Below are positions 3,444 through 22,837 of a stretch of DNA of 64,000 nucleotides, piece by piece. The position numbers and the translations under genes were made by a program. The notes beneath the pieces are model-generated. The model ran no database searches. It was given only the letters and a program-made list of their open reading frames with translations, and was not told the origin of the DNA. Source of the stretch: Anaeramoeba ignava BMAN (taxonomy: Eukaryota > Protista > Anaeramoebae); the NCBI GenBank assembly GCA_028826165.1, contig JAPDFW010000138.1:1-64000 (forward strand), written 5' to 3'. Position 1 is the stretch's first letter; every line of letters starts with the position of its first letter.

Positions 3444-5228
3444 TTAATTATTAAATTTGTTAATTAATAAATCAAATAAATTTGGATTTGTTTGATTTAA
3501 TTGAAAATAATCAATTCCAATTTGAATTTCATTAATTATTTCTTGTGTAATTTCAATTCCTTCTTTGATTTGATTTGAATAAATCCAATATTCAAATATT
3601 TGAAATGATTTATTACTTAATTCACTATAATCTGTAACTTTATTAGAAGTATCATTTGTTACAGATAAAAACATTCCTCGATATAATTCACTTCTCATTA
3701 TTAATATTAATTTTGGAAATTTATACTGTTTTTCTTTTCTTTCAATTATAAAATCTTTTTCATTTTCATTTTCATTTAAATAAATTCTTTTCATTGTTTC
3801 TTCAATTTTTTCATTTGAATTTATAATTTCTTTAATTTCAAAATATAATTTTGGATTTATTTTGGAATTGTTTGAATAAATCATTTCAAATATTTGATTT
3901 GATTCTTTAATTGATTTTTTTGAAATAATTTCTTGAAGTTTTTCAATTTCATTTTGATTTTGTTTTAATCTATATTTCAATATTAATTTATGAGCTTCAA
4001 TTATTTCTCCATTTTCTGTTTTAAATGAAATATCACAAAATTCTTTTCTTCTAAATAATTTTATCAAATCTTCTTCAAGATTGGAAAAAGGAGAAAGGAA
4101 AGGAGAATAATAAAGAAATGATTTGTAAGCACAACAAGAAATATGATAATTAGAAATTTCTTCATTAAATCTTAATTCAGGAAATTCAATTTGAATAGGA
4201 ACTAATTGATTTTTTATATTTCCAGTTCCTAATTGATGAAAAAAATTATTTCCAAAACCTATTAATTTTGGTTTGGAAGTTAAAATCAAAGTATGATTAT
4301 ATCCACAAGAAATTTCAAGAATATTATCATCATCTTCAAATAAAGATGATTTGATTTCAGTAAATTCATAAGTATTTCCATTTTTGCCAAGTCCATTATA
4401 TTCCCCAAATCCACATGAATAAAGTTTTCTTTTTGGATTTTGATTTTGATTTTCATTTTCAATCAGCATTATTGAATGGTCATATCCACATTGAATATCA
4501 ATTATTTTGCCTTTTGGAATATTTTGGATTTTAGTTAATTTATCGATTGTTTCATCTTTTCTTCTTGATTCTCTTAATCCAAATTTACCATATTCATTAT
4601 ATCCACATCCAAATAATTCTTGATTTGAATTTAAAAGGAAAACACGATTTGAATAATTTCCTGAAAATATTTTAGAAACATTTTTCATCATTAAGATTGG
4701 TTTTTCTATTTTTTTAAGTGTTTTAGAATCAACACCAAGTTGAGAATATTGATTTGAACCAATTCCATAAGCATTTTGATTTGAAGTTAATAAGTAAATT
4801 GAAGTATATCCAGTAACAATATCTTGAATTATTCTATCATTTGTATCTTCAATTAATGATGAAATATTGATAAATTCATTTGAATTATTTGGATTAATAT
4901 CTTTTCCTTTGGCAAATACATTTCCTTCTTTTGTTAAAATAGCTTCATTTTGAGAACCAACAGTTACTTTTTGAATATTTTCTTCAATTTGGATTTTTTC
5001 AGGATTTTGATTTGAATCATTTAAATAATATTCATTTAAATATTCTATTGCTTTTCCATTTTCAAAAAGGAAAATTGTTGAATAATTTCCTGATGAAATT
5101 TGTTTAATTTGTTTTTCATTTTCATTTTCATTTTCAAATTTAAATTGAATTGGTTTTGTTATTTTATTTGGTTCATTTTTGAAAAGTTTTGGCTTATTAT
5201 TTAAACCAAAAAATAAAATTTCATTCAT
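3444..5228 (-). CDS. RCC1-like repeat + BTB/POZ domain protein
   Basis: Intronless 594-aa ORF. RCC1 repeats (IIDIQCGYDHSIML, ISCGYNHTLIL, GNNFFHQLGTG); BTB motifs FCDISF..IEAHKLILKYR and LILIMRSELYRGMF. Confidence 0.85.
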   Translation of the reverse strand: MNEILFFGLNNKPKLFKNEPNKITKPIQFKFENENENEKQIKQISSGNYSTIFLFENGKAIEYLNEYYLNDSNQNPEKIQIEENIQKVTVGSQNEAILTKEGNVFAKGKDINPNNSNEFINISSLIEDTNDRIIQDIVTGYTSIYLLTSNQNAYGIGSNQYSQLGVDSKTLKKIEKPILMMKNVSKIFSGNYSNRVFLLNSNQELFGCGYNEYGKFGLRESRRKDETIDKLTKIQNIPKGKIIDIQCGYDHSIMLIENENQNQNPKRKLYSCGFGEYNGLGKNGNTYEFTEIKSSLFEDDDNILEISCGYNHTLILTSKPKLIGFGNNFFHQLGTGNIKNQLVPIQIEFPELRFNEEISNYHISCCAYKSFLYYSPFLSPFSNLEEDLIKLFRRKEFCDISFKTENGEIIEAHKLILKYRLKQNQNEIEKLQEIISKKSIKESNQIFEMIYSNNSKINPKLYFEIKEIINSNEKIEETMKRIYLNENENEKDFIIERKEKQYKFPKLILIMRSELYRGMFLSVTNDTSNKVTDYSELSNKSFQIFEYWIYSNQIKEGIEITQEIINEIQIGIDYFQLNQTNPNLFDLLINKFNN

Positions 5229-5279: not shown

Positions 5280-8200
5280 TTAAATGAAATAAGTCTCAAG
5301 TTCATCAACTTCCCATTTATTTTGACAACCAGCTAAATAACTTGTTGCTTCTTCTGTATTAAATTGAATTCCATTAGGTAGTTTGTAACTGCTTCCAAAC
5401 CCTGAATATCCATATTTTAAATTAGAAAATAACTCGATATCACCTGTAAATATTTTAATAAAAAAAATGATTATGTTATTTATTTATTAATTTAATGTTA
5501 ATTTTGATAAAAATTTTTGATTAAACTAAAATAATTTACTATCTATTTCCATAAAGATAAATATATAATTTTAATAAAAATTTAATTTATTAAATCAAAA
5601 TCATTTACCCTCTATTTTCATAAAGATATTTAATTTTCATTATTTATTCAATGAATTTTAATTATAATAACAAGATTAAATAAATATTATATTTACTTCC
5701 AAAAACGGCAACTTTGCTTAATTGATACTTAATAGCATATTTTTCATAATAATTTTGAAGTGGGAATTTCTTTGGATTTCGATCTCCTTTATCATTTCTT
5801 AATGAAAAAATAAATGCATTTAGATCTGGAATATATCCCTCTTCCTTTCTTCTATCTTTTTTTCTCCATTTTAATTTATCAGTTGTAAATCCAACTTCAG
5901 TAAAACCTCCAAAAATAAAATTATCTTTTGTTTTGATAATAATTAATGTTTTTCCTTTATCATCACAACTTTTGTGCCATTTTTGAGAATTAAATCCATC
6001 ATTTTTTGCTGAAAATCCTTTTTTCATTTTAGAAAAAAAATCATTATCATTTATCCATCTTTGTAATTTATAAATATATTCTCTATCTTGAATAATTTCT
6101 GAATTGGAAAAAATCTTTTCTAATCCCATTTCTTGTTTCATTTTCTCAATTTCTGCTTTTAAATTTTGATTCTCTTTTTCTTTGTTTTGAATTTCTGATT
6201 TCAAATCTTGATTATCTCTTTCTTCATTTTTCTTTCTATTTCCTTGTTTTTCGATTTCTTCTTCTAATTTCTTGATTTTTTGATCTTTCTCTTCAATTCT
6301 CCTGTTTTTCTCTTGATTTTCTTTTGATTTTTCTTCAATAGTTTGTTTATGCAAATCTAGTTGAGAGTTATGAAACTGTGAAATTCCATCAAGAAATGTC
6401 TTTGTTTGTTCTTTTTGTGTTTCAATTTGTAAATTCAATTTGGAAATCTCTTTTTCTTTCTTCTCAGTTTCTTGATTTAATTTTTCAACTTCTAATTTCA
6501 AATTCAAAATCTCTTTTTCTTTCTTCTCATTTTCTTCATTTTTGTTTTCAACTTCTAATTTCAAATTCAAAATTTCTTTTTGTTGCTTTTGATTTTCTTG
6601 ATGTTTGTTTTCATTTTCTTGTTTTAATTTTGTGATTTCTTCTTGTTGTTTTTGATTTTCTAATTTCAAATTCAAAATCTCTTTTTCTTTCTTCTCATTT
6701 TCTTCATTTTTCTTTCCATTTGTTTTTCTTTCTCAACAAATTCTAATTGTGTTTTTAAAAATTTGAGAAATTTTTCTCGAGAAGTGTTTCTGTTTCTTGA
6801 TCTTGAATTTTATAATTCTTGACTAATGTGATTAAATCAAAAATTGATTTTTGTTTGGAAATCATTTCAAATGATAAATTAAAAGCTAAAGAATTGGATT
6901 TATCACATAAAAGTGCCTTCTTAAATTCCTCAATAGCTTTATCGTTTTCTTTTTTTTTAGAATAAATTTGCCCAATTTTGATGTGAATTAAACATTCATT
7001 CGATTTATCTTGTTTTAAATTATAAAAAGAAAGGCAAGTTTTTGAAGCGCTTCAAGATAATCTGGATTCATTTCTAAAACTTTATTCAAATATTCAATAG
7101 CTTTTGAATAGTTATTTTTTGTCAAATAACAATTTGCTTTTTTAAAATACCAATTTGGTGTTTCTTTATGATTTCCAAGTGCTTCTTCTGCTAAAATTAG
7201 AAGCGAATAAACTTCTAAATAAAGATTTGTTGTTGTTGTATCTTTATTTGAATTCCCTTCTTCGATTTGGATTAAAATATCCTTCGTTTTTTGAGGATTT
7301 TGTTCAAGATAAATTCTGGAAAGTGAAATATTTGTTTCTAAAATTTTTGAAGTTGAATTGCTAGTAGAATAAATTTCTTTTAAAATCAATAAAGCGTTTT
7401 CAATTAAATTCGGATTTGTTGTCAGTTTAAACGATTTTGTTAATAATTGTTCTGCTTCTCTGTATTCTCTTTGTTTAAAGAGAATTTCTCCTTTTGCAAA
7501 TTGTTGTTTAGCAAGTTCTTCTGGAATTCTTAATTCTTTTTCTAAAAGGGAAATTTGTAAATTAATAATTTGTAAATTTTCTGGTTCTAATTTTCTTGCG
7601 AATTCAAGAATTTTATAAGCGATATCGGAATTTGATTGTTTAATTTCTAGAGATTTGGTTACGCATTTTGAGATTTTTTCTGTTTTCCATTTTTCAATTT
7701 CAGATTTCAAATCCAAATTAGGTTGAACAAATTTAGGATCAATTCTTTCATTTTTTTCAGGAATAGTTGGATTTTCTGGATTTTCTTGAATAATTTTCTC
7801 AATATATTTTCTTTCATAAGTTCTTCCATTCACCAAAACTGGATCTTGAAGAATTTTATTTGATTCAAGTTTGTTTTCATAGTTTGTGGGTATTTTCATG
7901 AACTTCTCCAATTTTTTGATGTTGATGGAACTCTCATTTTTTGCTTCAATTTGATTTGTTATCAGAAATGTTGTTCCAACTGACTCATTCAATACAGTTT
8001 TGATCAAATTTAAAAACTGAATTACAAAATTTCCTGGATAATCGCAATAAGATTCAAATTGTGAGAAATTAATTTCATTTGCTTCTGAATTTAAAGAATC
8101 AAATATTTGCTCAATTTTTAAATCAATTTCGTTTTTGGCAACTAATTCTTCAATTACATTATAAAACTTCTTTTTTTCTTCTTCATTTAAATTGATTAGA

Positions 8201-9253
8201 TATTCTTGAAGAGATCCAACAATTTTTTTGGATTGTAAACAAGTTATCAGGAAATAGAAATCATGGATAGCTTTTGTTAATTCTTCTTTATCTAAAAATT
8301 TGTTGTTATCTCTATTTCAAACAAAAAGAAGGAATAAATCCAAAGAAATTTATTCTATTATAATTGAATTGTTGTTTTCAATTTATATTTAATTACAAAT
8401 CCCAAGAAGTAAATAGAATTTTAATTTGGTAATTCCAATCACTTATTGAAAATTCAAGAATTTCTTTCATAATTTTTTCAAAATTAATCGGATCTTCAGC
8501 TTTTCTATTTTCAATAAAAAATGAATCAAAAATGAATCAGTCTAATTATCAATTTGTAAAAGGAGATACTTACAGTTGAAATATTCCACAAATAATTTCT
8601 CCACTTTTCTTTTCAAGTCCAAATCTCTGTTCAATAAATCCCAAATTGGTTTTTTCATATTCAAATATTATTTGATTTCTTGGTTCATCAATTTTTTGGA
8701 TTTGATTTCGTTGAATTTCTTGAGATAAATTTTGAAGATATTTTTGAGTTTTTGCATCATTGCTTTGTTGATCATTCCTCATTTCCTTAAAAAGTTTAGC
8801 AAGATCTTGAATATCGGTATGAGTTAATATAGTTAAATCCATATTCAAATCCCCAATATAACTATCTAATCTAATTGATTCCTCTTGAAATGCTTTTTGT
8901 TTTTTTTTTGATGTAAAAAATTTCTTTACTTTTGATTCTGTATCATATTTTTTTAACATTTCTTGTATTTTTTTCAAAGTTTCATTAACGTTTTCTAATG
9001 TTGAAAAAAGAAACTTAGATGTTTGAATTTGTTTAATTTCTATTTTATTATTTTTTATTTTTTTTTGAATTAAATTATCCAATTTATTTTCCCTTTTTTT
9101 TTTTTGCTTTTTTTTACCTTCTATTGGGTTTTTGAGAGCATCTATTCTTTGAAGTAATCTCTTAACTTCATCAATATTCTCTTTATATGAATCATATCTT
9201 TTTTTAAAGAACCCAATAATAGAAGTAATTGATTGAATAATTTCAGATGCCAT
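5280..9253 (-). CDS. MLKL-N-like 4-helix bundle - EF-hand (NCS-like) - U-box - TPR - coiled coil - TLDc protein, copy A (homopolymer frameshifts at about 7025 and 6725-6780)
   Basis: Exons 9253-9118, 9039-8574, 8504-8397, 8311-5697 and 5443-5280. N-term KENIDEVKRLLQRIDAL..KYDTESKVKKFF..FQEESIRLD; EF loop DLDNNKFLDKEE; U-box ILQDPVLVNGRTYERKYIE..PNLDLKSEIEKW; TPR YSKAIEYLNKVLEMNPDY; TLDc DGFNSQKWHKSCDDKGKTL..IFGGFT..WEVDELETYFI. Confidence 0.75.
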
Positions 9254-9329
9254 AATTAACAAAAAAAAAATGAAAAAAAAATGAAAAAAAAATTTTTTTT
9301 TATTCCAATTTATTTAAAATAATTTATTT

Positions 9330-10145
9330 ATTAAAATAATATAAAACTATTCCAAATATTTTAATAAAATTGATAAAATATTTTAATAAAGAAAAAAAAT
9401 GAATTGAAACCTATTTTAATAATAATTTAATTATGGAAACTATATAAAAATTAATTTTAAAAATAATTTAATTATTAAAATATTATTTTTTAATTTAAAT
9501 TTATTTATATTTTATTATTAAATATTTTTATAAAGAAAAAAAAATGAATTGAAATCTATTTTAATAATAATTTAATTATAAAAACTATATAAAAATTAAT
9601 TTTAAAAATAATTTAATTATTAGAATAATATTTTTTAATTTAATTTTATTTATATTTTATTATTAAATATTTTTAATTAATTTATTATTTAAATTTTAAA
9701 TAGATTTAATTAAAATTAAATTATAGAAATTATATAAAAATTAATTTTAAAAATAATTTAATTATTAAAATAATATAAAACTATTCCCAATATTTTAATA
9801 AAATTGATAAAATATTTTAATAAAGAAAAAAAATGAATTGAAACCTATTTTAATAATAATTTAATTATAAAAACTATATAAAAATTAATTTTAAAAATAA
9901 TTTAATTATTAAAATAATATTTTTAATTTAAAATTATTTATATTTTTTATTAAATATTTTTAATTAATTTATTATTTAAATTTTAAATAGATTTAATTAA
10001 ATTTAAATTATGAAAATTATATAAAAATTAATTTTAAAAATAATTTAATTATTAAAATAATATTTTTAATTTAAAATTATTTATATTTTATTATTAAATA
10101 TTTTAATAAAGAAAAAAAATGAATTGAAACCTATTTTAATAATAA
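9330..10145. repeat. Complex AT-rich repeat modules in the divergent promoter (AAAGAAAAAAAATGAATTGAAACCTATTTTAATAATAA about 4x)
   Basis: Module recurs near 9388, 9532, 9822 and 10108, and again in the duplicated region at about 15990-16790. Confidence 0.7.
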
Positions 10146-10946
10146 ATTAATTTGGAATTTATTCTATTTTATATATTTTATTAATTTTTATTTATTTAGA
10201 ATAATATTTTTTAATTTAAAATTAATTATATTTCTTTATTAAATAATTTTAAATTGATTTTTCTTATTTTAATATTTTAATAAAAGAATCCAAATTTAAT
10301 TATAATTAAATTCTATTTCCAATTTTTATTTTAATTTATTAAAATTAATTAAATAAAAATAATTATAAAATTAAATTCATTTCACTTCTTAATTTATTTA
10401 TAATTTAAATAAAAACTTTTTTCCATTTTTTTTTTTTAAAATAAAATAAAAAGCAAAAAATAAAATAAATAAAAAGTTTTTGGAGAAGCAAAAGCAAAAA
10501 TAAAATCAATAAAAAGAAAAGAACATAATTTTTTATGTTATTGAAAAGAATCAATAATTTCTTTTATTTTTTAATTTAATTTTTAATTATTTAAACTCAA
10601 TTTCAAAAATTTGGACAATTTATTCCAAAAAAATATAAATAAATAAATATAAACAAAAGAAATAAAAATACTGTCCGTTTTTTAAATAATTAAAATTAGA
10701 TCAATAAGAAAAGGAAAAGAAATAAATATTTGTTTTATTTTGTTTTGGTTTTATTTTGTTTGTTTTATTTATGATCCTCTTTTTAATTTAAAATTGGACA
10801 AAAAAAATAATTTTTTTTATTAAAAAAATATTGCCTGCATTTTAATAAATAAAGAAATTGGACTTTAAAAGAAAAAAAAACTAAATAGAATAAAGTTCAT
10901 TTTTTTTTCATTTGGAAAAAATTTTTTTAAAAAACACAAAAAAAAG

Positions 10947-11372
10947 ATGGCAATTACTGAAAAACAAATCAAAGCAACATTTGATGCTATTGATACTGAT
11001 AAAAGTGGAAAACTTGATAAGAAAGAATTCACAACTTTTTGCAAAAGATTTGGAAATCGATTTTCAGATTGGGAAATTAACTTAATGATTAAAATTGCAG
11101 ATAAAGATGGAGATGGAATTTCTTATTCTGAATTCAAACATTATGTTCTTGATGATCATTCACATCCTTCCAAAGATGATTTAAAAAAGATTTTCAAAGC
11201 TTGTGATTTGGATGGAAATGGAACAGTTAGTAAAGGTGAAATTATGCAAGTTTCTCGTTTTTTACGTCGACCAATGACTGAACAACAAGCGAATCAATTT
11301 ATGGATAAATATGATACTGATAAATCTGGAAGTCTCAAATGGAAAGAATTCAAAAAAATATGGATCAAATAA
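10947..11372 (+). CDS. Calmodulin-like 4-EF-hand protein, copy A
   Basis: 141 aa. EF loops DTDKSGKLDKKE, DKDGDG-ISYSE (one residue short), DLDGNGTVSKGE and DTDKSGSLKWKE. Confidence 0.92.
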   Translation: MAITEKQIKATFDAIDTDKSGKLDKKEFTTFCKRFGNRFSDWEINLMIKIADKDGDGISYSEFKHYVLDDHSHPSKDDLKKIFKACDLDGNGTVSKGEIMQVSRFLRRPMTEQQANQFMDKYDTDKSGSLKWKEFKKIWIK

Positions 11373-11564
11373 TTTCTTTTTTTTTTCTTTTCAATTCTTT
11401 TTTTTTCTTTCTAATTTTTGAATTCCTTTTTTTTTTCTTCTTATTCAAACAAATTCAAACATTAAAAAAAGTTTCTTCCTTCTCAATTCTTTTATTTCCT
11501 TTTTATTTTCTTATTAGTTTATTAATTTTTAATTTGAATTGTTTTCTTATTTATTAATTAATTT

Positions 11565-14500
11565 TTAAATGAAATAAGATTCAACTTCATCAACAACCCA
11601 TGAATTATAAGAACCAGCTAAATAACTTCTAGCTTCATCGGTATCATATTGAATTCCTTTAGGTAAAGTATAAACTTCTCCGAAATTCGAAATATGAGGT
11701 TTTAATGAGGAATTCAGAATTATCGCGGAACCAAAATATGGACCTCTTTCTAAGTAATTATACCAAATAGCATTTTTTTCTTCTCCTTTTTGAATGGGAA
11801 ATTTCTCAGGTTTTCGATCTCCTTTATCATTTCTTAATGAAAAAATAAATGCATTTGAATCTAAAATAAATCCTTCATGCGCATGCGAGATTCTATATTT
11901 TTTACTCCATTTTGATGTATTAGTTGTAAATCCAACTTCAGTAAAACCTCCAAAAATAAAATTATCTTTTGTTTTGATAATAACTAATGTTTTTCCTTTA
12001 TTATCACAACTTTTATGCCAATTTTGACAATTAAATCCATCTCTTATTGCTGAAAATCCTAATTTCATTTTAGAAAAAAAATCATTATCATTTATCCATT
12101 CTTTTAATTTCTTAACATATTCAATATCTTGAATAATTTCTGAATTCAAAAATGCTGGAAATTCACTTTTCATTGCTTTGAATTCTTCCATTTCTTCTTC
12201 TAATTGCTTGATTTTCTGATCTTTCTTTTCACTTTCATCATTTTTGTTATTTCCTTGTGTTAATCTTTTATTTTGTTCTTCTAATTGCTTGATTTTCTGA
12301 TCTTTATTCTCACTTTCATCATTTTTGTTTTCATTTTCTTGTTTTAATCTTGTAATTTCTTCTTGTTGTTTTTGATTTTCTTCTTCTAATTGCTTGATTT
12401 TCTGATCTTTATTTTTAATTTTTCGATTATTATTTTTATTTCCTTTTTTTAATCTTTTATTTTCTTCTTCTAAATACTTGATTTTCTGATCTTTCTTTTC
12501 ACTTTCATCATTTTTGTTTTTATTTCCTTGTGTTAATCTTGTAATTTCTTCTTCTAATTGCTTGATTTTCTGATTTTTATTCTCACTTTCATCATTTTTG
12601 TTTTCATTTTCTTGTGTTAATCTTGTAATTTGTTCTTGTTTTTTTTGATTTTCTTCTTCTAAATGCTTGATTTTCTGATCTTTCTTTTTACTTTCATCAT
12701 TTTTGTTTTTATTTCCTTGTGTTAATCTTGTAATTTCTTCTTGTTGTTTTTGATTTTCTTCTTCTAATTGCTTGATTTTCTGATCTTTATTTTTAATTTT
12801 TCGATTATTATTTTTATTTCCTTTTTTTAATCTTTTATTTTCTTCTTCTAAATGCTTGATTTTCTGATCTTTCTTTTCACTTTCATCATTTTTGTTTTTA
12901 TTTCCTTGTGTTAATCTTGTAATTTCTTCTTCTAATTGGTTTATTTTCTGATCTTTTATTCTCACTTTCATCATTTTTGTTTTCATTTTCTTGTTTTAAT
13001 TTTGTAATTTCTTCTTGTTGTTTTTGATTTTCTTGATTTTTGTTTTCATTTTCTTGTTTTAATTTTGTGATTTCTTCTTGTTGTTTTTGATTTTCTAATT
13101 TCAAATTCAAAATCTCTTTTTCTTTCTTTTTACTTTCTTCATTTTTCTTTCCATTTGTTTTTTCTTTCTCAACAAATTCTAATTGTGTTTTAAAAATTTG
13201 AGAAATTGTTTGAAGGAATTTTTTATCTTGATCTTTCATTTTATATTCTTTGATGAATTCAATCAATTCATAAATTTGATTTTGGTTTTGGTTTCGATTT
13301 TGGTTTTGAACACAATTAAATAAAGAATCAAAAGCTTCACTATTGTTTGGATCACAAATAAGTGCTTTTTTAAAATATTGTTTTGCATCTTCATAATTAA
13401 ATTTTGTCGAATAAAATTGACCAATTTTGGTGTGTATTTCAGATTCGTTAATATTATCATTAACTGAATTATAAATTGTTATTAATTCCTTCAAAGGTTC
13501 AATATTATTGGGTTGAATCTTATGAGATTTCTTAAAATATTGAATACAATCTGAATCATTTCTTTGATTGAGAATTCTTGCTTTTTGCAAATACCAATTT
13601 GAAAGTGCATCAATATTTCCCAGAAGTTCATCAACTGAAATTAATAATGAATAAATTTCTAAATATTGATTGGAAGATGTTTTGGTTGAATATGGATTGT
13701 AATTCTGAATATCATGATGCAAATTCGAATTTTTTGATTCTAATTCAACCAAAATTTTTTTTGCTTCTTGTCTTTTATGTTGTATTAAATATATTCTTGA
13801 AAGTGAAATCTTGGTTTCATAAATTTTGGAAATTTTTTCCAAAGGTTTTGAAGAATCAAAATAACCATTATGGTTATAACATTTCAATAAAAGATTTAAA
13901 ATTTGTTCGGTTAATTCTGGATCAGTTGTTTTATCTATTGCTTTTTTTAATAATTTTTCAATATTTTCCAATTTTCCTTGATTAAATAATATTTCAGCTT
14001 TTTCAAATTGCTTCTGAGCTATTTCTTCTGGAATTTTTAAAATTTTTTCTAAAAGTGAGATTTGTAAATCAATGATTTCCAAGTTTGAGGAATCTAATTT
14101 CTTTGCAAATGAAAGAAGTTGATAAGCAATATCTGGATCTTTTTCCCTTATTATGTTTGCTTGATCCAAACATTCCTTAATTCTTTTTGTTTTCCATTTT
14201 TGAATTCTTTTTTTTTCTCCTGGATTTAGTTGAATAGCTTTTGGATCAAATGTTTTATTTGTATCAGGTAATTTTGGGTTATTTGGATTTTCTTCAATAA
14301 TTTTATCTATATCACTTTTTTCATAATTTTGCGAATTTACAAGTACTGGATCTTCAAGAATTTTATCAGGATGAAGTATATTTTGAAAATCTTCTTTTAT
14401 TTTCAATAATAGAGATAAATCAGTCTTGGATAATGAATTGGAATTGATTTCTAAAACTGGAACAGAATCAGAAAAAAATGTTTTTCCAACTGTTTGATTG

Positions 14501-15856
14501 AAAACGGTTTTGATCACATTTAAAAATTCAATCACAAAATTTCCAGGTTTGGTGCAATAATATTGGAATTGTTGAAGATTAATGAGATTTTTAGTTGATT
14601 TGTTTAAATCTAATGATTGCTTCAAAGAGTAACTTTGGGTTGTTTCTTCTTTTACATTTTCGAATAATTCTTCAATTTTGGATTCAATTTGATTTTTGTT
14701 AACAAAATCATCAATTATTTTATTAAATTCTTTTTTTTTTTCTTCATTCAATTTTTCCACATATTGATTAAGAGATCCAATAGAATCTTTCAATCTCAAA
14801 CAAGAAACCAAAATGTAAAGATTACGAAGAGCATTAGTTAATTCTTCTTCATCTAATTTATCATTACCATCACTATATTTTTTTTTACAAAAAGAAATAT
14901 AATAAATTTTTGATTTTTGATTTAAGAATATTTTGAATTATTTTACTCATCCCAAGATTTGAAAAGAAGTTTAATTTGAGTTTTTGGATCAGCAGTTGAA
15001 AAATCCAAAAGAGCTTTAAAAAATTGATTAAAGAGAATTGGTTCAGTAGGTTTTCTATTTTTAAATCAAGAGATAAATTAGAAAATTAAAAATGAAATTA
15101 AAATTAAAATTAAAATTAAAATTAAAATTAAAATTAAAATTGAATTAAATTACAGCCCACATGTTGTGCAAATAATAGTTCCACTTCTCTCTTCAAGTCC
15201 AAATTTTTGTTTAATAAATTCTAAATTTGTATAATCATTCAAAGTTTCATTTGAAGTTTCATTTGAATTTTGATTTGAATTTTGATTTGAATTTTGATTT
15301 GTTGATGAAAGTTGTGAAATTTGTGAAGATAAATTTTGGAAATATTCTTGAGTTTGAATTTCAACTTTGTTTTGATGTTTTTCAATTCCTCTAAAAATTT
15401 TAGCAAGATCTCTTACTTCTCGATTTATTAAAGAAGTTAATTCAAAACTTAAATCTCCAATATAACTATCTAATTTAATTGATTCCTCTTGAAATGCTTT
15501 TTGGTTTGTTTTTGATGTAAAAAATCTCTTTAATTTTGATTTTGTATCATATTCTTGTAGCATTTCTTGTATTTTTTTCAAAGTTTCATTAACATTTTTT
15601 AATGTTGAAAAAAGAAAATCAGATGTTTGAATTTGTTTGATTTCTATTTTATTTTGTTTTTTTTTTTTTGAATTAAATTATCCAATTTATTTTCCCTTTT
15701 TTTTTTTTGCTTTTTTTTACCTTCTATTGGGTTTTTGAGAGCATCTATTCTTTGAAGTAATCTCTTAACTTCATCGATATTCCCTTTATATGAATCATAT
15801 CTTGATTTAAAGAACCCAATAATAAAAGTAATTGATTGAATAATATCAGATGCCAT
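11565..15856 (-). CDS. MLKL-N-like - EF-hand - U-box - TPR - coiled-coil repeats - TLDc protein, copy B (one +1 homopolymer frameshift at about 12955)
   Basis: Exons 15856-15721, 15643-15154, 15054-14947 and 14872-11565. Same first three intron positions as copy A; EF loop DDDGNDKLDEEE; U-box ILEDPVLVNSQNYEK; TPRs; KDQKIKQLEEE repeats; complete TLDc. Confidence 0.75.
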
Positions 15857-17578
15857 AATTAACAAAAAAAAAATGAAAAAAAAATAAAAAAAAAATTTTT
15901 TTTTATTCCAATTTATTTAAAATAATTTATTTATTAAAATAATATAAAACTATTCCAAATATTTTAATAAAATTGATAAAATATTTTAATAAAGAAAAAA
16001 AATGAATTGAAACCTATTTTAATAATAATTTAATTATGGAAACTATATAAAAATTAATTTTAAAAATAATTTAATTATTAGAATAATATTTTTTAATTTA
16101 AAATTATTTATATTTTATTATTAAATATTTTTAATAAAGAAAAAAAATGAATTGAAACCTATTTTAATAATAATTTAATTATAAAAATTATATAAAAATT
16201 AATTTTAAAAAAAATAATTTAATTATTAAAATATTATTTTTTTAAAGAAAAATGAATTTAATTTTTATTTATATTTTATTATTAAATATTTTTAATTAAT
16301 TTATTATTTATATTTTAAATAGATTTTAATTTAAATTTAAATTATAGAAATTATATAAAAATTAATTTTTTAAAAATAATTTATTTATTAAAATAATATA
16401 AAAACTATTATTTTTAATTTATTTTAATTAAAATTTTGATTAAAATATTTTTATAAAGAAAAATGAATTGAAATTATATTTTAATAAATAATTTATTTAT
16501 TAAAATAAAAACTATATAAAAATTTTAATTTTAAAAATATTTTTTAAAGAAAAATGAATTGAAAAATATTATTTTTAATTTAAAATTATTTTTTAATTTA
16601 ATTATTAAATATTTTTAATTAATTTATTATTTAAATTTTATAATTTAATTAAATTTAAAATTATAGAAATTATATAAAAATTAATTTTAAAAATAATTTA
16701 ATTATTAAAAATAATATTTTTAATTTTAAAATTATTTATATTTTATTATTAAATATTTTTATAAAGAAAAATGAATTGAAACCTATTTTAATAATAAATT
16801 AATTTGGAATTTATTCTATTTTATATATTTTATTAATTTTTATTTATTTAGAATAATATTTTTAATTTAAATTTAATTATATTTCTTTATTAAATAATTT
16901 TAAATTGATTTTTCTTATTTTAATATTTTAATAAAAAAATCCAAATTTAATTATAATTAAATTCTATTTCCAATTTTTATTTTAATTTATTAAAATTAAT
17001 TAAATAAAAATAATTATAAAATTAAATTCATTTCACTTCTTAATTTATTTATAATTTAAATAAAAAGTTTTTTCCATTTTTTTTTTTTAAAATAAAATAA
17101 AGCAAAAAATAAAATAAATAAAAAGTTTTTGGAGAAGCAAAAGCAAAAATAAAATCAATAAAAAGAAAAGAACATAATTTTTTATGTTATTGAAAAGAAT
17201 CAATAATTTCTTTTATTTTTTAATTTAATTTTTAATTATTTAAACTTAATTTCAAAAATTTGGACAATTTATTCCAAAAAAATATAAATAAATAAATATA
17301 AACAAAAGAAATAAAAATACTGTCCGTTTTTTAAATAATTAAAATTAGATCAATAAGAAAAGGAAAAGAAATAAATATTTGTTTTATTTTGTTTGTTTTA
17401 TTTATGATCCTCTTTTTAATTTAAAATTGGACAAAAAAAATAATTTTTTTTATTAAAAAAATATTGCCTGCATTTTAATAAATAAAGAAATTGGACTTTA
17501 AAAGAAAAAAAACTAAATAGAATAAAGTTCATTTTTTTTTCATTTGGAAAAAATTTTTTTAAAAAACACAAAAAAAAG

Positions 17579-18004
17579 ATGGCAATTACTGAAAAACAAA
17601 TTAAAGCAGCATTTGATGCTATTGATACTGATAAAAGTGGAAAACTTGATAAGAAAGAATTCACAACTTTTTGCAAAAGATTTGGAAATCGATTTTCAGA
17701 TTGGGAAATTAATTTAATGATTAAAATTGCAGATAAAGATGGAGATGGAATTTCTTATTCTGAATTCAAACATTATGTTCTTGATGATCATTCACATCCT
17801 TCAAAAGATGATTTAAAAAAGATTTTCAAAGCTTGTGATTTGGATGGAAATGGAACAGTTAGTAAAGGTGAAATCATGCAAGTTTCTCGTTTTTTACGTC
17901 GACCAATGACTGAACAACAAGTGAATCAATTTATGGATAAATATGATACTGATAAATCTGGAAGTCTCAAATGGAAAGAATTCAAAAAAATATGGATCAA
18001 ATAA
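17579..18004 (+). CDS. Calmodulin-like 4-EF-hand protein, copy B
   Basis: Differs from copy A by two amino acids (KAT/KAA; QQAN/QQVN). Confidence 0.92.
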   Translation: MAITEKQIKAAFDAIDTDKSGKLDKKEFTTFCKRFGNRFSDWEINLMIKIADKDGDGISYSEFKHYVLDDHSHPSKDDLKKIFKACDLDGNGTVSKGEIMQVSRFLRRPMTEQQVNQFMDKYDTDKSGSLKWKEFKKIWIK

Positions 18005-18199
18005 TTTCTTTTTTTTTTCTTTTCAATTCTTTTTTTTTTCTTTCTAATTTTTGAATTCCTTTTTTTTTTCTTCTTATTCAAACAAATTCAAACATTAAAA
18101 AAAGTTTCTTCCTTCTCAATTCTTTTATTTCCTTTTTATTTTTTTATTAGTTTATTAATTTTTAATTTGATTTGTTTTCTTATTTATTAATTAATTTGA

Positions 18200-19972
18200 T
18201 TAAATGAAATAAGTTTCAATTTCATCAACAACCCATGAATGATAAGAACCAGCTAAATAACTTTTAGCTTCATCGGTATCATATTGAATTCCATTAGGCA
18301 GATTATAACTATAACCAAAATTTGAATAACCATGTTGTAACTTATTATCCAAATAAACATCATTTATACTATAACCAAAACCAAAAATGGGAGCATAATT
18401 TAAAAAAGAAAAAATTGCAATATCTTCTTTTCCTTTTTGAATGGGAAATTTCTCAGGTATTCTATCCCCTTTATCATTTCTTAATGAAAAAATAAATGCA
18501 TTTGAATCATTAATGCTTTGTCCATTTGATTTAAATCCAACTTGAGTAAAACCTCCAAAAATAAAATTTTGTTTTGTTTTGATAATAATTAATGTTTTTC
18601 CTTTATTATCACAAATTGAATGCCATTTATTACAATCAAATCCATCTCTTTTTGCTGAAAATCCTTTTTTCATTTTAGAAAAAAAATCATTATCATTTAT
18701 CCATTCTTGTAATTTCTGAACATATTCTTTTTCTCGAATAATTTCGGAAGCTGAGAAATATTTCATTATTTTTTCATATTCCAAATCTTTTTGATATTGA
18801 TCTCGATATTTATCAAAAATAGGTTTCATTTTCTCAACTTCTTTCTTCCATTTCTCTCGAATTTCTTTCTTTAAATTGTGAATTTCTTTTCTTTTTAAAT
18901 TCATTTTTTTTTCTTGTTTTCTATTTTCTTGAATTAATTTTTTTTGCTTCTTGATGTAAAGATATTTGGGAAAAAAATCAAATTGTTTTAATTTATCAAA
19001 ATCTTGTTTTGAAATTGAATCTTTATCAAATAATGAAAAAAAAGAATGAAATAATCTTTTCTTTTCATTCATTTTGTGTTCATATTTCTTTAATTTTAAT
19101 GATTTAATTCTTTTTTTAATCCAATTATTTAAAAATTGAAAAAAATCAAATTGAAAAATTTCTTTTTTTTCTTGTTTAAATTGAATAAATTTGATAATTT
19201 CTTCTTTAGTTAAATTGAATAAATTCTCATTATTCTGAATTTGGGAAAAATTTTGATTTATTAATTCAAAACATTTTATTTCAATTTCATTTGAATTTAA
19301 ATTTCGATTTTGGAAAAAAAATTGGAAAAAATTTGAATAATTAATTGAATTTGAAATTTTTTTTTGAATAATTTCTTTCAATAAATTTAATTTAAAATAA
19401 ATTGAAATTTCTAATAATTGAATAAGATTTTCTTGATTCTCAAAAGAAATATTTCCATAATAAATATAACTCAAAATTGATTCCATTTCTTTTTTATTAA
19501 ATTGATTTAAAGAAATAAAAAGAGATTCTTGCCTTAATGATTCATTAAAAAAAGGAGATCTTGAAGATAAAATTGATTTATGAACTTTAATTTCAAAAGG
19601 ATTTGATTTATTCTCAACAAAAATTGAAAAATCTTTAAATGAATTTCCTTTTAAAAGGTTTGAATAATCTTTAATTAAATTTTTTGTTACTTTTTTTTCT
19701 AAATTTTTCATTTCATTTTCATTTTGATTTTGATTTGCATTTTGATTTGCATTTTCAATTTGGTTATTATTATTATTATTGCTATTATTATTATTATTGT
19801 TATTATTATTATTATTGTTATTATTATTATTATTGTTATTGTTATTATCCTTCTTGTCCATTTTGTTTGTTTTGTGTTGATGTTTATGCTGATGTTTGTG
19901 TTTATGCGTTTTTGTTTTTGTTTTTGTGTTTTTGTTTTTGTTTTCATTTTTGTGTTGTTTTTTATTATTCAT
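18200..19972 (-). CDS. BTB/POZ + TLDc domain protein with N-terminal poly-Asn
   Basis: BTB FKDFSIFV..IKVHKSILSSRSPFF..ILSYIYYG; TLDc FSAKRDGF..WHSICDNKGKTL..IFGGFT..WVVDEIETYFI. Confidence 0.85.
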   Translation of the reverse strand: MNNKKQHKNENKNKNTKTKTKTHKHKHQHKHQHKTNKMDKKDNNNNNNNNNNNNNNNNNNNNNSNNNNNNQIENANQNANQNQNENEMKNLEKKVTKNLIKDYSNLLKGNSFKDFSIFVENKSNPFEIKVHKSILSSRSPFFNESLRQESLFISLNQFNKKEMESILSYIYYGNISFENQENLIQLLEISIYFKLNLLKEIIQKKISNSINYSNFFQFFFQNRNLNSNEIEIKCFELINQNFSQIQNNENLFNLTKEEIIKFIQFKQEKKEIFQFDFFQFLNNWIKKRIKSLKLKKYEHKMNEKKRLFHSFFSLFDKDSISKQDFDKLKQFDFFPKYLYIKKQKKLIQENRKQEKKMNLKRKEIHNLKKEIREKWKKEVEKMKPIFDKYRDQYQKDLEYEKIMKYFSASEIIREKEYVQKLQEWINDNDFFSKMKKGFSAKRDGFDCNKWHSICDNKGKTLIIIKTKQNFIFGGFTQVGFKSNGQSINDSNAFIFSLRNDKGDRIPEKFPIQKGKEDIAIFSFLNYAPIFGFGYSINDVYLDNKLQHGYSNFGYSYNLPNGIQYDTDEAKSYLAGSYHSWVVDEIETYFI

Positions 19973-20869: not shown

Positions 20870-22837
20870 ATGAATTCAAATTTACAAAACAAAATCAAAA
20901 AAAGAAAGGAAGATTCCAATCAAATCGAAAAACAAGAAGAAAAAAAGATAAAAACATCCAAATTAAATCAAGAAGAAAAGAAAGAAGAAAATTTATCAAA
21001 ATCAATTCTGAATCATTCCAAAAAGAAAAATGTTAATAGAGTGGGAGTAATTGATCTAAATTTTAAATTAGGATTTCCACAATCAATAGAGAAGCACGAA
21101 GTAGAAAATTCAATACCAATTTTGATTAGACAACAAACACAAGAAATTCTCCAAAAAATTGAAAAAAATGGTTTTATTAAATCATATATTTTCACAGGAC
21201 CACCAGGGGTTGGGAAATCATATATGCTTTATCATATTGCTGATTATTGCTCTAAATTGTCTAATTGGGTTGTTATCTATTTACCCAATATTGATGAATG
21301 GATAAATCAAGAAAGTTATGTTATATCAAGAAAAATTGTTATCAATTTAATTCAAAATTATCAATCGATTCTCAGTAAATGTTTTGCATTTGAATATGAT
21401 ACAAAATTATGGGATGAAAAAAATCCCACTGAAGAATCCAAAACAAAAATGATTTCTGAATGTACAAGATTGCTGAACTATCTTATGATGGGGAATCTCT
21501 TTGATATTCGAGTTTTAGTTGCAATTGATGAATGGAATTTTTTGTTTCGTCAAGAAAGAAAATATCAAGAACATATTTTAGATATTTTCAAAATCATTCC
21601 GACTATTAATCAAGGATTTTTCCTAGCTGCAGTAAGTTCAAGTTTTCATTATCCGATAGACCCAAATAATTCCAATAAACGATTTCTCGAGTGCAGAATA
21701 CCTATACAAATTTTTAATGAGGCTGAATTTCAATCAATTATTAATTGGTTAAAACAAAATGACTATTTACCACAATCCATGAAAGATGAAGAAATTGAGA
21801 AATTCACAGCCAGAATTCCAAAATTAATTGGTTTTCTTTTTCAATCATATTACAATTACCGTTTATCTCAAAAACAAAATTGGCTAAGTCATGCACATTA
21901 TCTTGCTGAAGAATCTTATGAATCAATGATTTCACATGTTCTTGATAAAAAGAAAATTGATTATGATCAAGTCAATTTTATTAAAAATATTTATTTAAAT
22001 TCACCTATTAAATATTTAGAAGATGAATGGAAGTTTTTAGGATTATTTAAGAAGAATAACCAAACTAATGAATTTAATCCAATTTGTGAATCAGTTAGAA
22101 AAGCTTTTATGTCTGTATTCCATCATAAACCCAATTCATATCTCTCCATATTAGCATCTAATGAACAATCAAGATGGATATCAGTAGAATTATATGTCTT
22201 CGAATCTTTCATTTCTAAAATCCAAAAATCAATTACAATCCCGAATATCAATCTAAGAGGAGAAAAAGGGAAGAATCAACAAGAATTCACAATTTTTTTA
22301 ACTCAGCAAATCCTTCAACAACCTTCAGAAACCCTTGATAAACTTGAACCAGGAACATTTCTAAAATGTTACCGAGATCATCCTGCTATTGATTGTATTG
22401 CTTATTCAACAACAAAAGAATTATTTTATATTCAAATTTCAGAAAAGTCATATTCACAACATATCCCCAAAATAGATTCACTTTTTGAAACAACATTCAA
22501 TAGAACCGAAGAAACTATTTTACAATATTATTCAAGAATTTGTGGAATGGAATCGGAATATCAACAATGTGAATTCACAAAAACAAAAAAAGAAAGAACA
22601 ATCAAATTACCAGCAAATCAATATTATATTTATATTACAACAAGCTCACATTATTACAAAAAAGCCAAATCTCAATATTCAGATGACCCAGTTATTTTAA
22701 TCAATTATGAAAATATTTCTCAACTTAATCCCGATCTTTGGGTATCAATAAGCAAATTTTTTGAAAATGAAGTGGAAAAACATTCTAATCAAGAAATACA
22801 TAATTCAAATTCAAATTCAAATTATATTTTTAAATGA
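20870..22837 (+). CDS. P-loop NTPase with C-terminal PD-(D/E)xK-like nuclease domain (Crinkler/RHS-type NTPase+REase architecture)
   Basis: Intronless 655 aa. Walker A YIFTGPPGVGKS; Walker B VLVAIDEWN; C-terminal SVELYV..HPAIDCIAY..LFYIQISEKSYSQH. Confidence 0.65.
   Translation: MNSNLQNKIKKRKEDSNQIEKQEEKKIKTSKLNQEEKKEENLSKSILNHSKKKNVNRVGVIDLNFKLGFPQSIEKHEVENSIPILIRQQTQEILQKIEKNGFIKSYIFTGPPGVGKSYMLYHIADYCSKLSNWVVIYLPNIDEWINQESYVISRKIVINLIQNYQSILSKCFAFEYDTKLWDEKNPTEESKTKMISECTRLLNYLMMGNLFDIRVLVAIDEWNFLFRQERKYQEHILDIFKIIPTINQGFFLAAVSSSFHYPIDPNNSNKRFLECRIPIQIFNEAEFQSIINWLKQNDYLPQSMKDEEIEKFTARIPKLIGFLFQSYYNYRLSQKQNWLSHAHYLAEESYESMISHVLDKKKIDYDQVNFIKNIYLNSPIKYLEDEWKFLGLFKKNNQTNEFNPICESVRKAFMSVFHHKPNSYLSILASNEQSRWISVELYVFESFISKIQKSITIPNINLRGEKGKNQQEFTIFLTQQILQQPSETLDKLEPGTFLKCYRDHPAIDCIAYSTTKELFYIQISEKSYSQHIPKIDSLFETTFNRTEETILQYYSRICGMESEYQQCEFTKTKKERTIKLPANQYYIYITTSSHYYKKAKSQYSDDPVILINYENISQLNPDLWVSISKFFENEVEKHSNQEIHNSNSNSNYIFK

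Follow-up and report, generated by a model that had tools for sequence, protein, structure and literature searches.

The question raised by this locus is what kind of protein is encoded by two similar regions of a 64,000-nucleotide stretch of the Anaeramoeba ignava BMAN genome (contig JAPDFW010000138.1, positions 1 to 64,000; the window). There the initial annotation had joined neighbouring open reading frames (ORFs) into one multidomain gene per copy, opening with a helical bundle of the type found in the cell-death protein MLKL. Both copies were found. They are tandem paralogues on the minus strand, copy 1 at 5280-9253 and copy 2 at 11565-15856, and each carries in order a bundle with its brace, an EF-hand domain, a U-box, TPR, a coiled coil and a TLDc domain. 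We hold this architecture and its homologies with high confidence. The fuller reading, in which Ca2+ would release a membrane-acting bundle in these one-chain paralogues, takes its mechanism from analogy, and we give it slightly less than an even chance.

The genome searched comprises 42.8 Mb in 147 contigs with about 18% G+C, and the window is its contig C139. The window copies were searched exon by exon, with spliced public gene models of paralogues standing in for the full chain. The exon plan predicted from the sequence is common to both copies and is as follows.

Copy 1, minus strand (ATG at 9253, stop codon 5280-5282)
9118-9253 (-), exon 1: start codon and bundle helices 1-2; aligns to residues 1-45 of the public paralogue models
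9040-9117 (-), intron 1: 78 nt, GT..AG, no in-frame stop, reads through as a 26-residue insert
8574-9039 (-), exon 2: bundle helices 3-4, two brace helices and the first helix of the EF-hand domain (Pfam MLKL_N 28.8 bits; profile A1)
8505-8573 (-), intron 2
8397-8504 (-), exon 3: N-terminal half of the EF-hand domain, ending within the Ca2+ loop; matches residues 200-235 of models P0059 and P0060
8312-8396 (-), intron 3
5697-8311 (-), exon 4: remainder of the EF-hand domain, U-box, TPR, coiled coil and N part of the TLDc domain
7675-7860 (-), U-box (Pfam and genome U-box scan)
about 7024-7660 (-), TPR (Pfam)
about 6130-6720 (-), coiled coil
5697-6108 (-), N part of the TLDc domain (Pfam)
5444-5696 (-), intron 4: precedes exon 5 and interrupts the TLDc domain
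5280-5443 (-), exon 5: C-terminal end of the TLDc domain and stop codon

Copy 2, minus strand (ATG at 15856, stop codon 11565-11567)
15721-15856 (-), exon 1: bundle helices 1-2
15644-15720 (-), intron 1: contains an in-frame stop
15154-15643 (-), exon 2: bundle helices 3-4, brace with an N/Q/S-rich insert and first EF helix; 61% identical to copy 1
15055-15153 (-), intron 2
14947-15054 (-), exon 3: N-terminal half of the EF-hand domain
14873-14946 (-), intron 3
11565-14872 (-), exon 4: EF-hand loop, degenerate U-box, TPR, tandem-repeat coiled coil and TLDc domain
14185-14364 (-), degenerate U-box (Pfam 17.1 bits)
12190-13096 (-), tandem-repeat coiled coil, an in-frame array
11565-12146 (-), TLDc domain (Pfam 54.3 bits)

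All of the predicted introns are of the GT..AG type, and introns 1-3 fall at identical codon positions in the two copies. Intron 1 is 77-78 nt long in the window copies. The insert that it would encode in copy 1 lies opposite a gap in every other row of alignment A2 (28/28) and has low predicted local distance difference test (pLDDT) values in the AlphaFold2 (AF2) model. The intron within the TLDc domain is present in copy 1 and in a paralogue on contig C143, but is found neither in copy 2 nor in the paralogues on contigs C35 and C36.

In the ORF track the segments are displayed apart, and standalone MLKL_N proteins of 130-270 aa are known elsewhere from the protein search. Both observations are as would be expected if a bundle protein, a U-box/TPR protein and a TLDc protein were separate genes merely lying in a row. 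The paralogues on C35 (L020:1431-3728) and C36 (L022:2983-5277) argue against such an arrangement. Each has one uninterrupted exon (766 and 765 codons, respectively) that holds the second half of the EF-hand domain, the U-box, TPR, the coiled coil and the TLDc domain together, from which we conclude that the part from EF-hand to TLDc is one chain. Upstream of this part, the bundle exon is free of stops up to its GT donor, the exon after it lacks a start codon and opens in mid-domain, and the order of exons is kept in at least six paralogues. The public models P0059 (999 aa) and P0002 (KAJ5079193.1, 990 aa) have MLKL_N and TLD in one protein. An ORF from the A. flamelloides transcriptome (P0057), which is identical to residues 1-446 of the genome model P0005, joins the bundle to an EF-hand domain and an SH3 domain in a single frame. 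Taken together, these exons, models and transcript make separate genes very unlikely indeed, and the placement of all the named domains in a single chain is supported at the level of gene prediction.

Splicing alone does not, however, give either window copy one open frame, so that the annotated joining of ORF fragments into one gene per copy stands as regards the single chain but not as regards splicing as its sufficient means. From tblastn frames and comparison with its C143 twin, copy 1 has four frame breaks at homopolymer runs, near 7027, 6775, 6756 and 6727. The sequence and tblastn frames of copy 2 give one, at the A-run 12954-12957. These breaks count against intact genes, as does the finding that the public protein collection searched returned no protein of the window's own copies. 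Both would follow if the window copies were real pseudogenes, decaying duplicates in a family of fast turnover of which only copies on other contigs (C35, C36) are functional. The breaks do bring in-frame stops in both copies, and that at 7027 is a 2-nt difference (T5 versus T3), which is less typical of polishing error. The dN/dS ratio between paralogues is also high. Nei-Gojobori values are 0.4-0.7, with 1.2 for the N part of the TLDc domain, although the method is rough at this base composition; they fit a fast-evolving family under constraint, yet they also fit relaxed constraint, a further point on the unfavourable side.

The position of the breaks points the other way. Copy 1 and the C143 paralogue are 98% identical, with 30 mismatches and about nine coding indels in 3.7 kb, and every one of these coding indels is a change of 1-2 nt in the length of a T or A homopolymer run. 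The C143 paralogue is broken at three other runs, each of which is intact in copy 1, so that the breaks are reciprocal. Inspection of the copies found no lesion outside homopolymers, no large deletion and no lost splice site. According to the genome paper (PMC11550330), the A+T content is 80.65% and Racon, Nanopolish and Pilon were used to polish the Nanopore R9.4 assembly. An assembly of this kind is prone to exactly such errors in duplicated A+T-rich sequence. In our view residual Nanopore errors in homopolymers most probably account for the frame breaks of both window copies, and we consider decay of both copies to be unlikely.

The first 120 or so residues had been assigned to the MLKL-type bundle, and the sequence profiles agree. 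With intron 1 read through, the window ORF 8570-9262 (-) matches the Pfam family MLKL_N (PF22215, curated cut-off 27 bits) at 28.8 bits, and copy 1 scores 29.8 bits in the genome scan. Among the public models, P0001 scores 50.4, P0002 40.8, P0003 37.4 and P0005 31.6 bits, and the spliced paralogues P0001-P0003 match over profile positions 1-134. When profile A1, built from exon 2 of nine family members, was run against the Protein Data Bank (PDB), the best seven matches were all human or mouse MLKL, with E values of about 4e-6 to 1e-5, and the next match was at 0.096. Run against 1.84 billion representative proteins, the same profile returned three strong A. ignava proteins followed by 51 weak ones, among them tarsier MLKL and an MLKL-like protein of shad, as well as proteins from a rotifer and from Lolium, the latter DUF7792/MCAfunc/RPW8-like.

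The AF2 model of the window bundle sequence, calculated with 28 homologues, has a mean pLDDT of 79.5 and contains four long helices (2-20, 27-66, 79-105 and 108-187). In the model of the spliced paralogue P0059 the helices are at 2-22, 28-50, 57-80 and 91-116, with two more at 118-135 and 139-154. The structural check that had been proposed for the N-terminus returned an MLKL-like bundle: the first Foldseek match is MLKL 6zvo (probability 1.0, TM score 0.62). In VIA-align the bundle model and MLKL superpose with Z 10.6 and a root-mean-square deviation of 2.8 Å over 118 residues at 20% identity, and tomato NRC2, the NRG1.1 CC-R domain (Z 10.4) and AtMLKL2 (Z 10.2) tie with MLKL. The fold alone is not specific, and here two results tell against the assignment: the Foldseek E value is not significant (0.11), and unrelated bundles (gamma-TuRC GCP, IncA and Cbl) score as high or higher in VIA, up to Z 12. 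Since the bundle fold is compatible but not decisive, the assignment to MLKL_N is carried by the sequence profiles, and with these and the models membership of the N-terminus in this family is supported. No kinase family was matched by Pfam on any exon or public paralogue model, and the brace is followed by the EF-hand domain; because it has no pseudokinase, the protein is not an MLKL orthologue.

The EF-hand domain is spread over small exons, its first helix ending exon 2 and its degenerate first hand lying in exon 3, while intron 3 cuts the canonical 12-residue Ca2+ loop. Profile A3 of this region matches KChIP4 (E 5.2e-10), frequenin (1.2e-9), NCS-1 and calcineurin B (1e-6) in the PDB. In the model of P0059 residues 1-350 (pLDDT 73.4) the bundle is followed by a short helix, two brace helices and a recoverin/NCS-like domain. 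The best Foldseek matches to this model are all EF-hand Ca2+ sensors, with recoverin first and then NCS-1, KChIP and CBL, at probability 1.0. One canonical loop of the form D-x-D/N-x-N/D/S-...-D/S-x-x-E occurs per protein in copy 1, copy 2, P0059, P0001, P0002, P0003 and P0005, and positions 1, 3, 5, 9 and 12 of the loop are kept in all members including that of A. flamelloides. The Pfam EF-hand score is over the cut-off in P0003, at the cut-off in P0005 (30.0 bits, EF-hand_7) and under it in P0002. A shape search of the ESM Atlas gave EF-hand clusters only and no cluster in which bundle and EF-hand are fused. On profile and model, then, the domain within the gene is a predicted NCS/KChIP-like EF-hand domain with one canonical Ca2+ loop.

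EF-hands had been placed in the chain by the initial annotation. The domain within the gene bears this out (A3 E 5e-10), but the sole EF-hand ORF visible as such, at 10947-11372 on the plus strand, is a separate gene. We rejected it as a part of the MLKL-like gene on three grounds: it lies on the opposite strand, it forms a complete calmodulin-like ORF, and it has been duplicated as an independent unit. It is 99% identical to a second calmodulin-like gene at 17579-18004 (+), and both encode 141 aa with four EF-hands. Each faces one of the MLKL-like copies head-to-head, within the duplicated block of 91-95% identity. Pairing with a calmodulin-like gene was likewise rejected as a feature of the family, the sole close copies being the two in the window; the next closest in the genome (C74 and C78) are 45-57% identical and lie away from other family members. 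Since a calmodulin-like gene is absent beside the other paralogues, the pairing is a by-product of local duplication.

The U-box (Pfam PF04564, curated cut-off 21.4 bits) is the least conserved named part of the chain. Copy 1 scores 31.8 bits, over the cut-off, and bears out the annotated U-box, whereas copy 2, at 17.1 bits, does not reach it. Among the paralogues the scores are 23.9 (P0059 exon), 21.9 (P0002) and 17.9 bits (P0001). Canonical U-boxes of the same genome score 44-79 bits as against 25-35 bits for the U-box of the MLKL-like family, which weakens the annotated reading. The match begins at profile position 11 in copy 1, C143 and C35. A profile of the family U-box finds plant PUB12, another plant U-box protein (PUB), AtPUB14, UBE4B and CHIP U-boxes in the PDB (best E 2e-4). 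Copy 1 retains the core D-P-V ... Y-E-R ... P-N ... W, with other residues where plant PUBs have C-P-I, and more of the core is gone in copy 2. The domain is thus best described as a divergent U-box, a predicted E3 module. TPR, which had also been annotated, is matched by Pfam on the window ORFs with up to 45 bits and reaches about 61 bits in the C35 and C143 paralogues. The coiled coil varies in length among paralogues and in copy 2 consists of an in-frame tandem array with periods of 63-378 nt.

The TLDc domain (Pfam TLD, PF07534, curated cut-off 24.5 bits) was found in both copies, as annotated, with 45.3 bits in copy 1 (N part only, the domain being cut by the intron) and 54.3 bits in copy 2; the C35 and C36 exons score 58.8 and 72.3 bits, respectively. 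Its Gly-containing motifs DG, FGG and FG are visibly kept. A phmmer search of the PDB with the copy 2 TLDc domain gave no match, and the TLDc profile found Skywalker alone (E 0.011), which places the domain far from the solved metazoan ones. TLDc is expanded throughout the genome, with at least 150 scored matches over the Pfam cut-off and 556 first-look candidates, most of the matches sitting at the ends of ORFs of 400-700 codons. V-ATPase binding has been shown for five mammalian and two yeast TLDc members (PMC8608904, PMC9263379, PMC11066047), and the initial annotation had the domain possibly aiming the protein at V-ATPase-bearing membranes. That suggestion is weakened by the remoteness from solved TLDc domains, and is weakly founded because the domain occurs in over 150 places in the genome. 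A third TLDc gene in the row, at 18203-19972 (-), encodes a poly-N/K/H-rich N-terminus, a BTB domain (48.5 bits), a coiled coil and TLDc (69.6 bits). Its TLDc domain resembles the one in the C35 MLKL-like gene more than the one in copy 1.

The A. ignava genome holds at least nine members of the family. The U-box/TPR tail is found in those on C139 (the two window copies), C143, C35, C102 and C36, the public model of the C102 member (P0001) being without TLDc. The C9 member has bundle, EF-hand and coiled coil, and the C115 member (P0003) has bundle, EF-hand and three DUF4159-like domains, with a second bundle gene adjoining it. The C63 member is a bundle ORF situated among RRM exons. In A. flamelloides the bundle and EF-hand are joined to SH3 (P0005). 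As judged from these predicted proteins, the constant unit is the combination of bundle, brace and EF-hand rather than the five-domain chain, and the tail is exchangeable (U-box/TPR/TLDc, SH3, DUF4159-like or possibly RRM). A homologue search of proteins returned A. ignava paralogues only, and its third query found nothing but itself; it missed known paralogues of 39% identity, so its blank says nothing about A. flamelloides or other taxa.

Two of these loci have features of their own. On C115 the two bundle genes lie in tandem within 358000-364800, and P0003, which carries the NCBI label 'T9SS type A sorting domain-containing', has repeats of roughly 230 aa with a weak likeness to DUF4159 and class I glutamine-amidotransferase-like folds. 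On C63, within 148500-156500, an MLKL_N-like bundle ORF (L025:3026-3657, 23.9 bits) stands on the same strand amid many RRM-type exons.

Comparison of the two window copies gives a mosaic of identities. The block 8723-11564 takes in half of exon 2, exon 1 with intron 1, and the promoter region together with the calmodulin-like gene; it matches 15327-18197 at 91-95% identity, whereas the EF-hand, U-box and TPR parts of the two copies share only 47-51% protein identity. This pattern would fit gene conversion or unequal crossing-over. With at least nine members, exchangeable tails, signs of gene conversion and fast divergence, the family appears to behave as one of the conflict type.

In animals, plants and fungi, it is through bundles of the MLKL/HeLo/RPW8 type that regulated cell death attacks membranes, and the switches that control these bundles differ with the lineage: phosphorylation, NLR assembly or amyloid templating. 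In MLKL the brace links the bundle to the pseudokinase, and activation of the pseudokinase releases the bundle. Domains of the NCS family clasp or release a helix or lipid upon Ca2+ binding. By analogy, the EF-hand domain of the Anaeramoeba protein would occupy the place of the pseudokinase switch, the brace running straight into it, and Ca2+ binding could alter the packing of brace and bundle. The freed bundle might then bind membranes or oligomerise, while the exchangeable C-terminal half (U-box, TPR and TLDc) would select the partner or compartment and perhaps add ubiquitin. The result might be permeabilisation that kills the cell, or a non-lethal remodelling of membranes of the endolysosome, phagosome or symbiosome. 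Mutations in the brace are reported to unleash MLKL (bioRxiv 10.1101/628370), and auto-inhibition of the bundle by the brace helix is also reported (PMC8433767). Ubiquitination of the MLKL bundle redirects MLKL to endosomes (PMC8816944); together with V-ATPase binding by TLDc proteins (PMC8608904, PMC11066047), this would make a site of action at endolysosomes, phagosomes or symbiosomes conceivable.

It sits poorly with a Ca2+ switch of this kind that only one loop is canonical, the remaining EF loops being degenerate. A complex prediction for the bundle-brace against the EF-hand domain scored 0.06, which is no evidence either way. The bundle could also act as a regulatory or protein-binding module, serving oligomerisation or partner binding as in the Cbl four-helix bundle or as proposed for plant U-box N-terminal domains, which would make the protein a U-box E3 ligase or adaptor that is modulated by Ca2+ and does not permeabilise membranes. 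Alignment of the Cbl TKB four-helix bundle with the model gives Z 9.2-10.1, close to the value for MLKL, the bundle carries an unremarkable net charge (+1 to +4), and coupling to tails as different as SH3, DUF4159-like domains and possibly RRM is as seen in adaptor modules. On the other hand, the sequence profiles pick MLKL specifically and not Cbl or generic bundles, and the bundle begins at residue 1 in every family member; in the MLKL, HeLo and CC executioners the bundle is likewise at the protein N-terminus. The U-box, moreover, is the least conserved named part and falls under the Pfam cut-off in copy 2 and P0001, which counts against this alternative. We regard the adaptor as somewhat unlikely, and return to the Ca2+-released, membrane-acting bundle as the reading that we tentatively prefer. 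Its most specific form, a Ca2+-gated MLKL-like executioner in which the EF-hand domain replaces the pseudokinase and a U-box/TLDc tail aims the protein at V-ATPase-bearing phagosome or symbiosome membranes, would be a further step along the same analogies, and we think it quite improbable.

The domains are already listed in public records, and their combination is new to the literature searched. The initial annotation had not recognised this combination, and our search found no paper describing the family, a chain of MLKL_N with TLDc, U-box or EF-hand, or an MLKL-like gene of an Anaeramoeba host. The nearest known systems each share a part of it. With animal MLKL (2MSV, 6ZVO and 4BTF) the protein has in common the Pfam family MLKL_N and profile-level similarity over helices 1-4 and the brace. 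It has neither the pseudokinase nor the RIPK3-type phospho-switch of MLKL, but an EF-hand domain after the brace instead, and MLKL has no counterpart to its C-terminal half (U-box, TPR, coiled coil and TLDc). Killing is a feature of MLKL and would be a putative one of the Anaeramoeba protein. The N-terminal bundles of plant MLKLs, RPW8/CC-R proteins (NRG1 and ADR1) and fungal HeLo/HELL proteins belong to the same superfamily. These families resemble that of Anaeramoeba in having many paralogues and swapped partner domains, but they are switched by a pseudokinase, NB-ARC oligomerisation or amyloid templating, and none has been described with an EF-hand, U-box or TLDc domain in the chain.

Plant PUBs with a U-box N-terminal domain (UND), a U-box and ARM repeats likewise have an N-terminal helical domain followed by a U-box and then helical repeats. 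The Anaeramoeba chain differs from them in having an EF-hand domain before the U-box, TPR rather than ARM repeats and TLDc at the end. The kinship between the plant UND and MLKL put forward in the initial annotation is a putative one; our literature search found no paper linking the two. NCS, KChIP and calcineurin B-like sensors are similar in having a compact domain of several EF-hands, by profile (E 5e-10) and by fold, while the Anaeramoeba domain is internal to a chain of 1,000-1,350 residues, is not N-myristoylated, carries a long insert and has a single loop that is clearly canonical. TLDc proteins such as OXR1, NCOA7, mEAK7/TLDC1, TBC1D24/Skywalker, yeast Oxr1p and Rtc5p also carry the domain at the C-terminus, and the motifs that matter in NCOA7 are kept. 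The Anaeramoeba TLDc domain differs in being far from the solved ones and one of hundreds in its genome, most of which have other N-terminal halves such as BTB.

If the preferred reading is true, it would place a death-type module in the Anaeramoebae, a little-studied lineage, and the brace running into a Ca2+ sensor would be a fourth, kinase-free kind of switch, in a free-living anaerobic protist. Were the executioner form to hold, a bacterivorous, symbiont-housing amoeba could rupture or re-route vacuoles or kill itself when infected, and a necroptosis-like, kinase-free module would exist in a deep-branching anaerobic protist. If the bundle is merely an adaptor, the finding becomes an ordinary lineage-specific shuffling of domains. 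The intact members (KAJ5079193.1 and the C35 gene) offer proteins that can be expressed directly.

We note three further features of the surrounding sequence. A gene with RCC1 repeats and a BTB domain lies directly downstream of copy 1 at 3444-5228 (-) and recurs on C143 (L019:4465-6000) and C35 (L020:5163-5999); its duplication along with the MLKL-like gene on these contigs indicates that a segment with at least two genes was duplicated. Between copy 1 and the calmodulin-like gene there is a tandem array at 9376-10260, with a period of 145/287 nt, about 3-6 copies and 78-85% matches, which recurs in the second unit at about 15910-16930. Finally, an intronless ORF of 655 aa at 20870-22834 (+) contains a P-loop NTPase region that matches DAP3 at 46.6 bits and STAND-type NTPases weakly.

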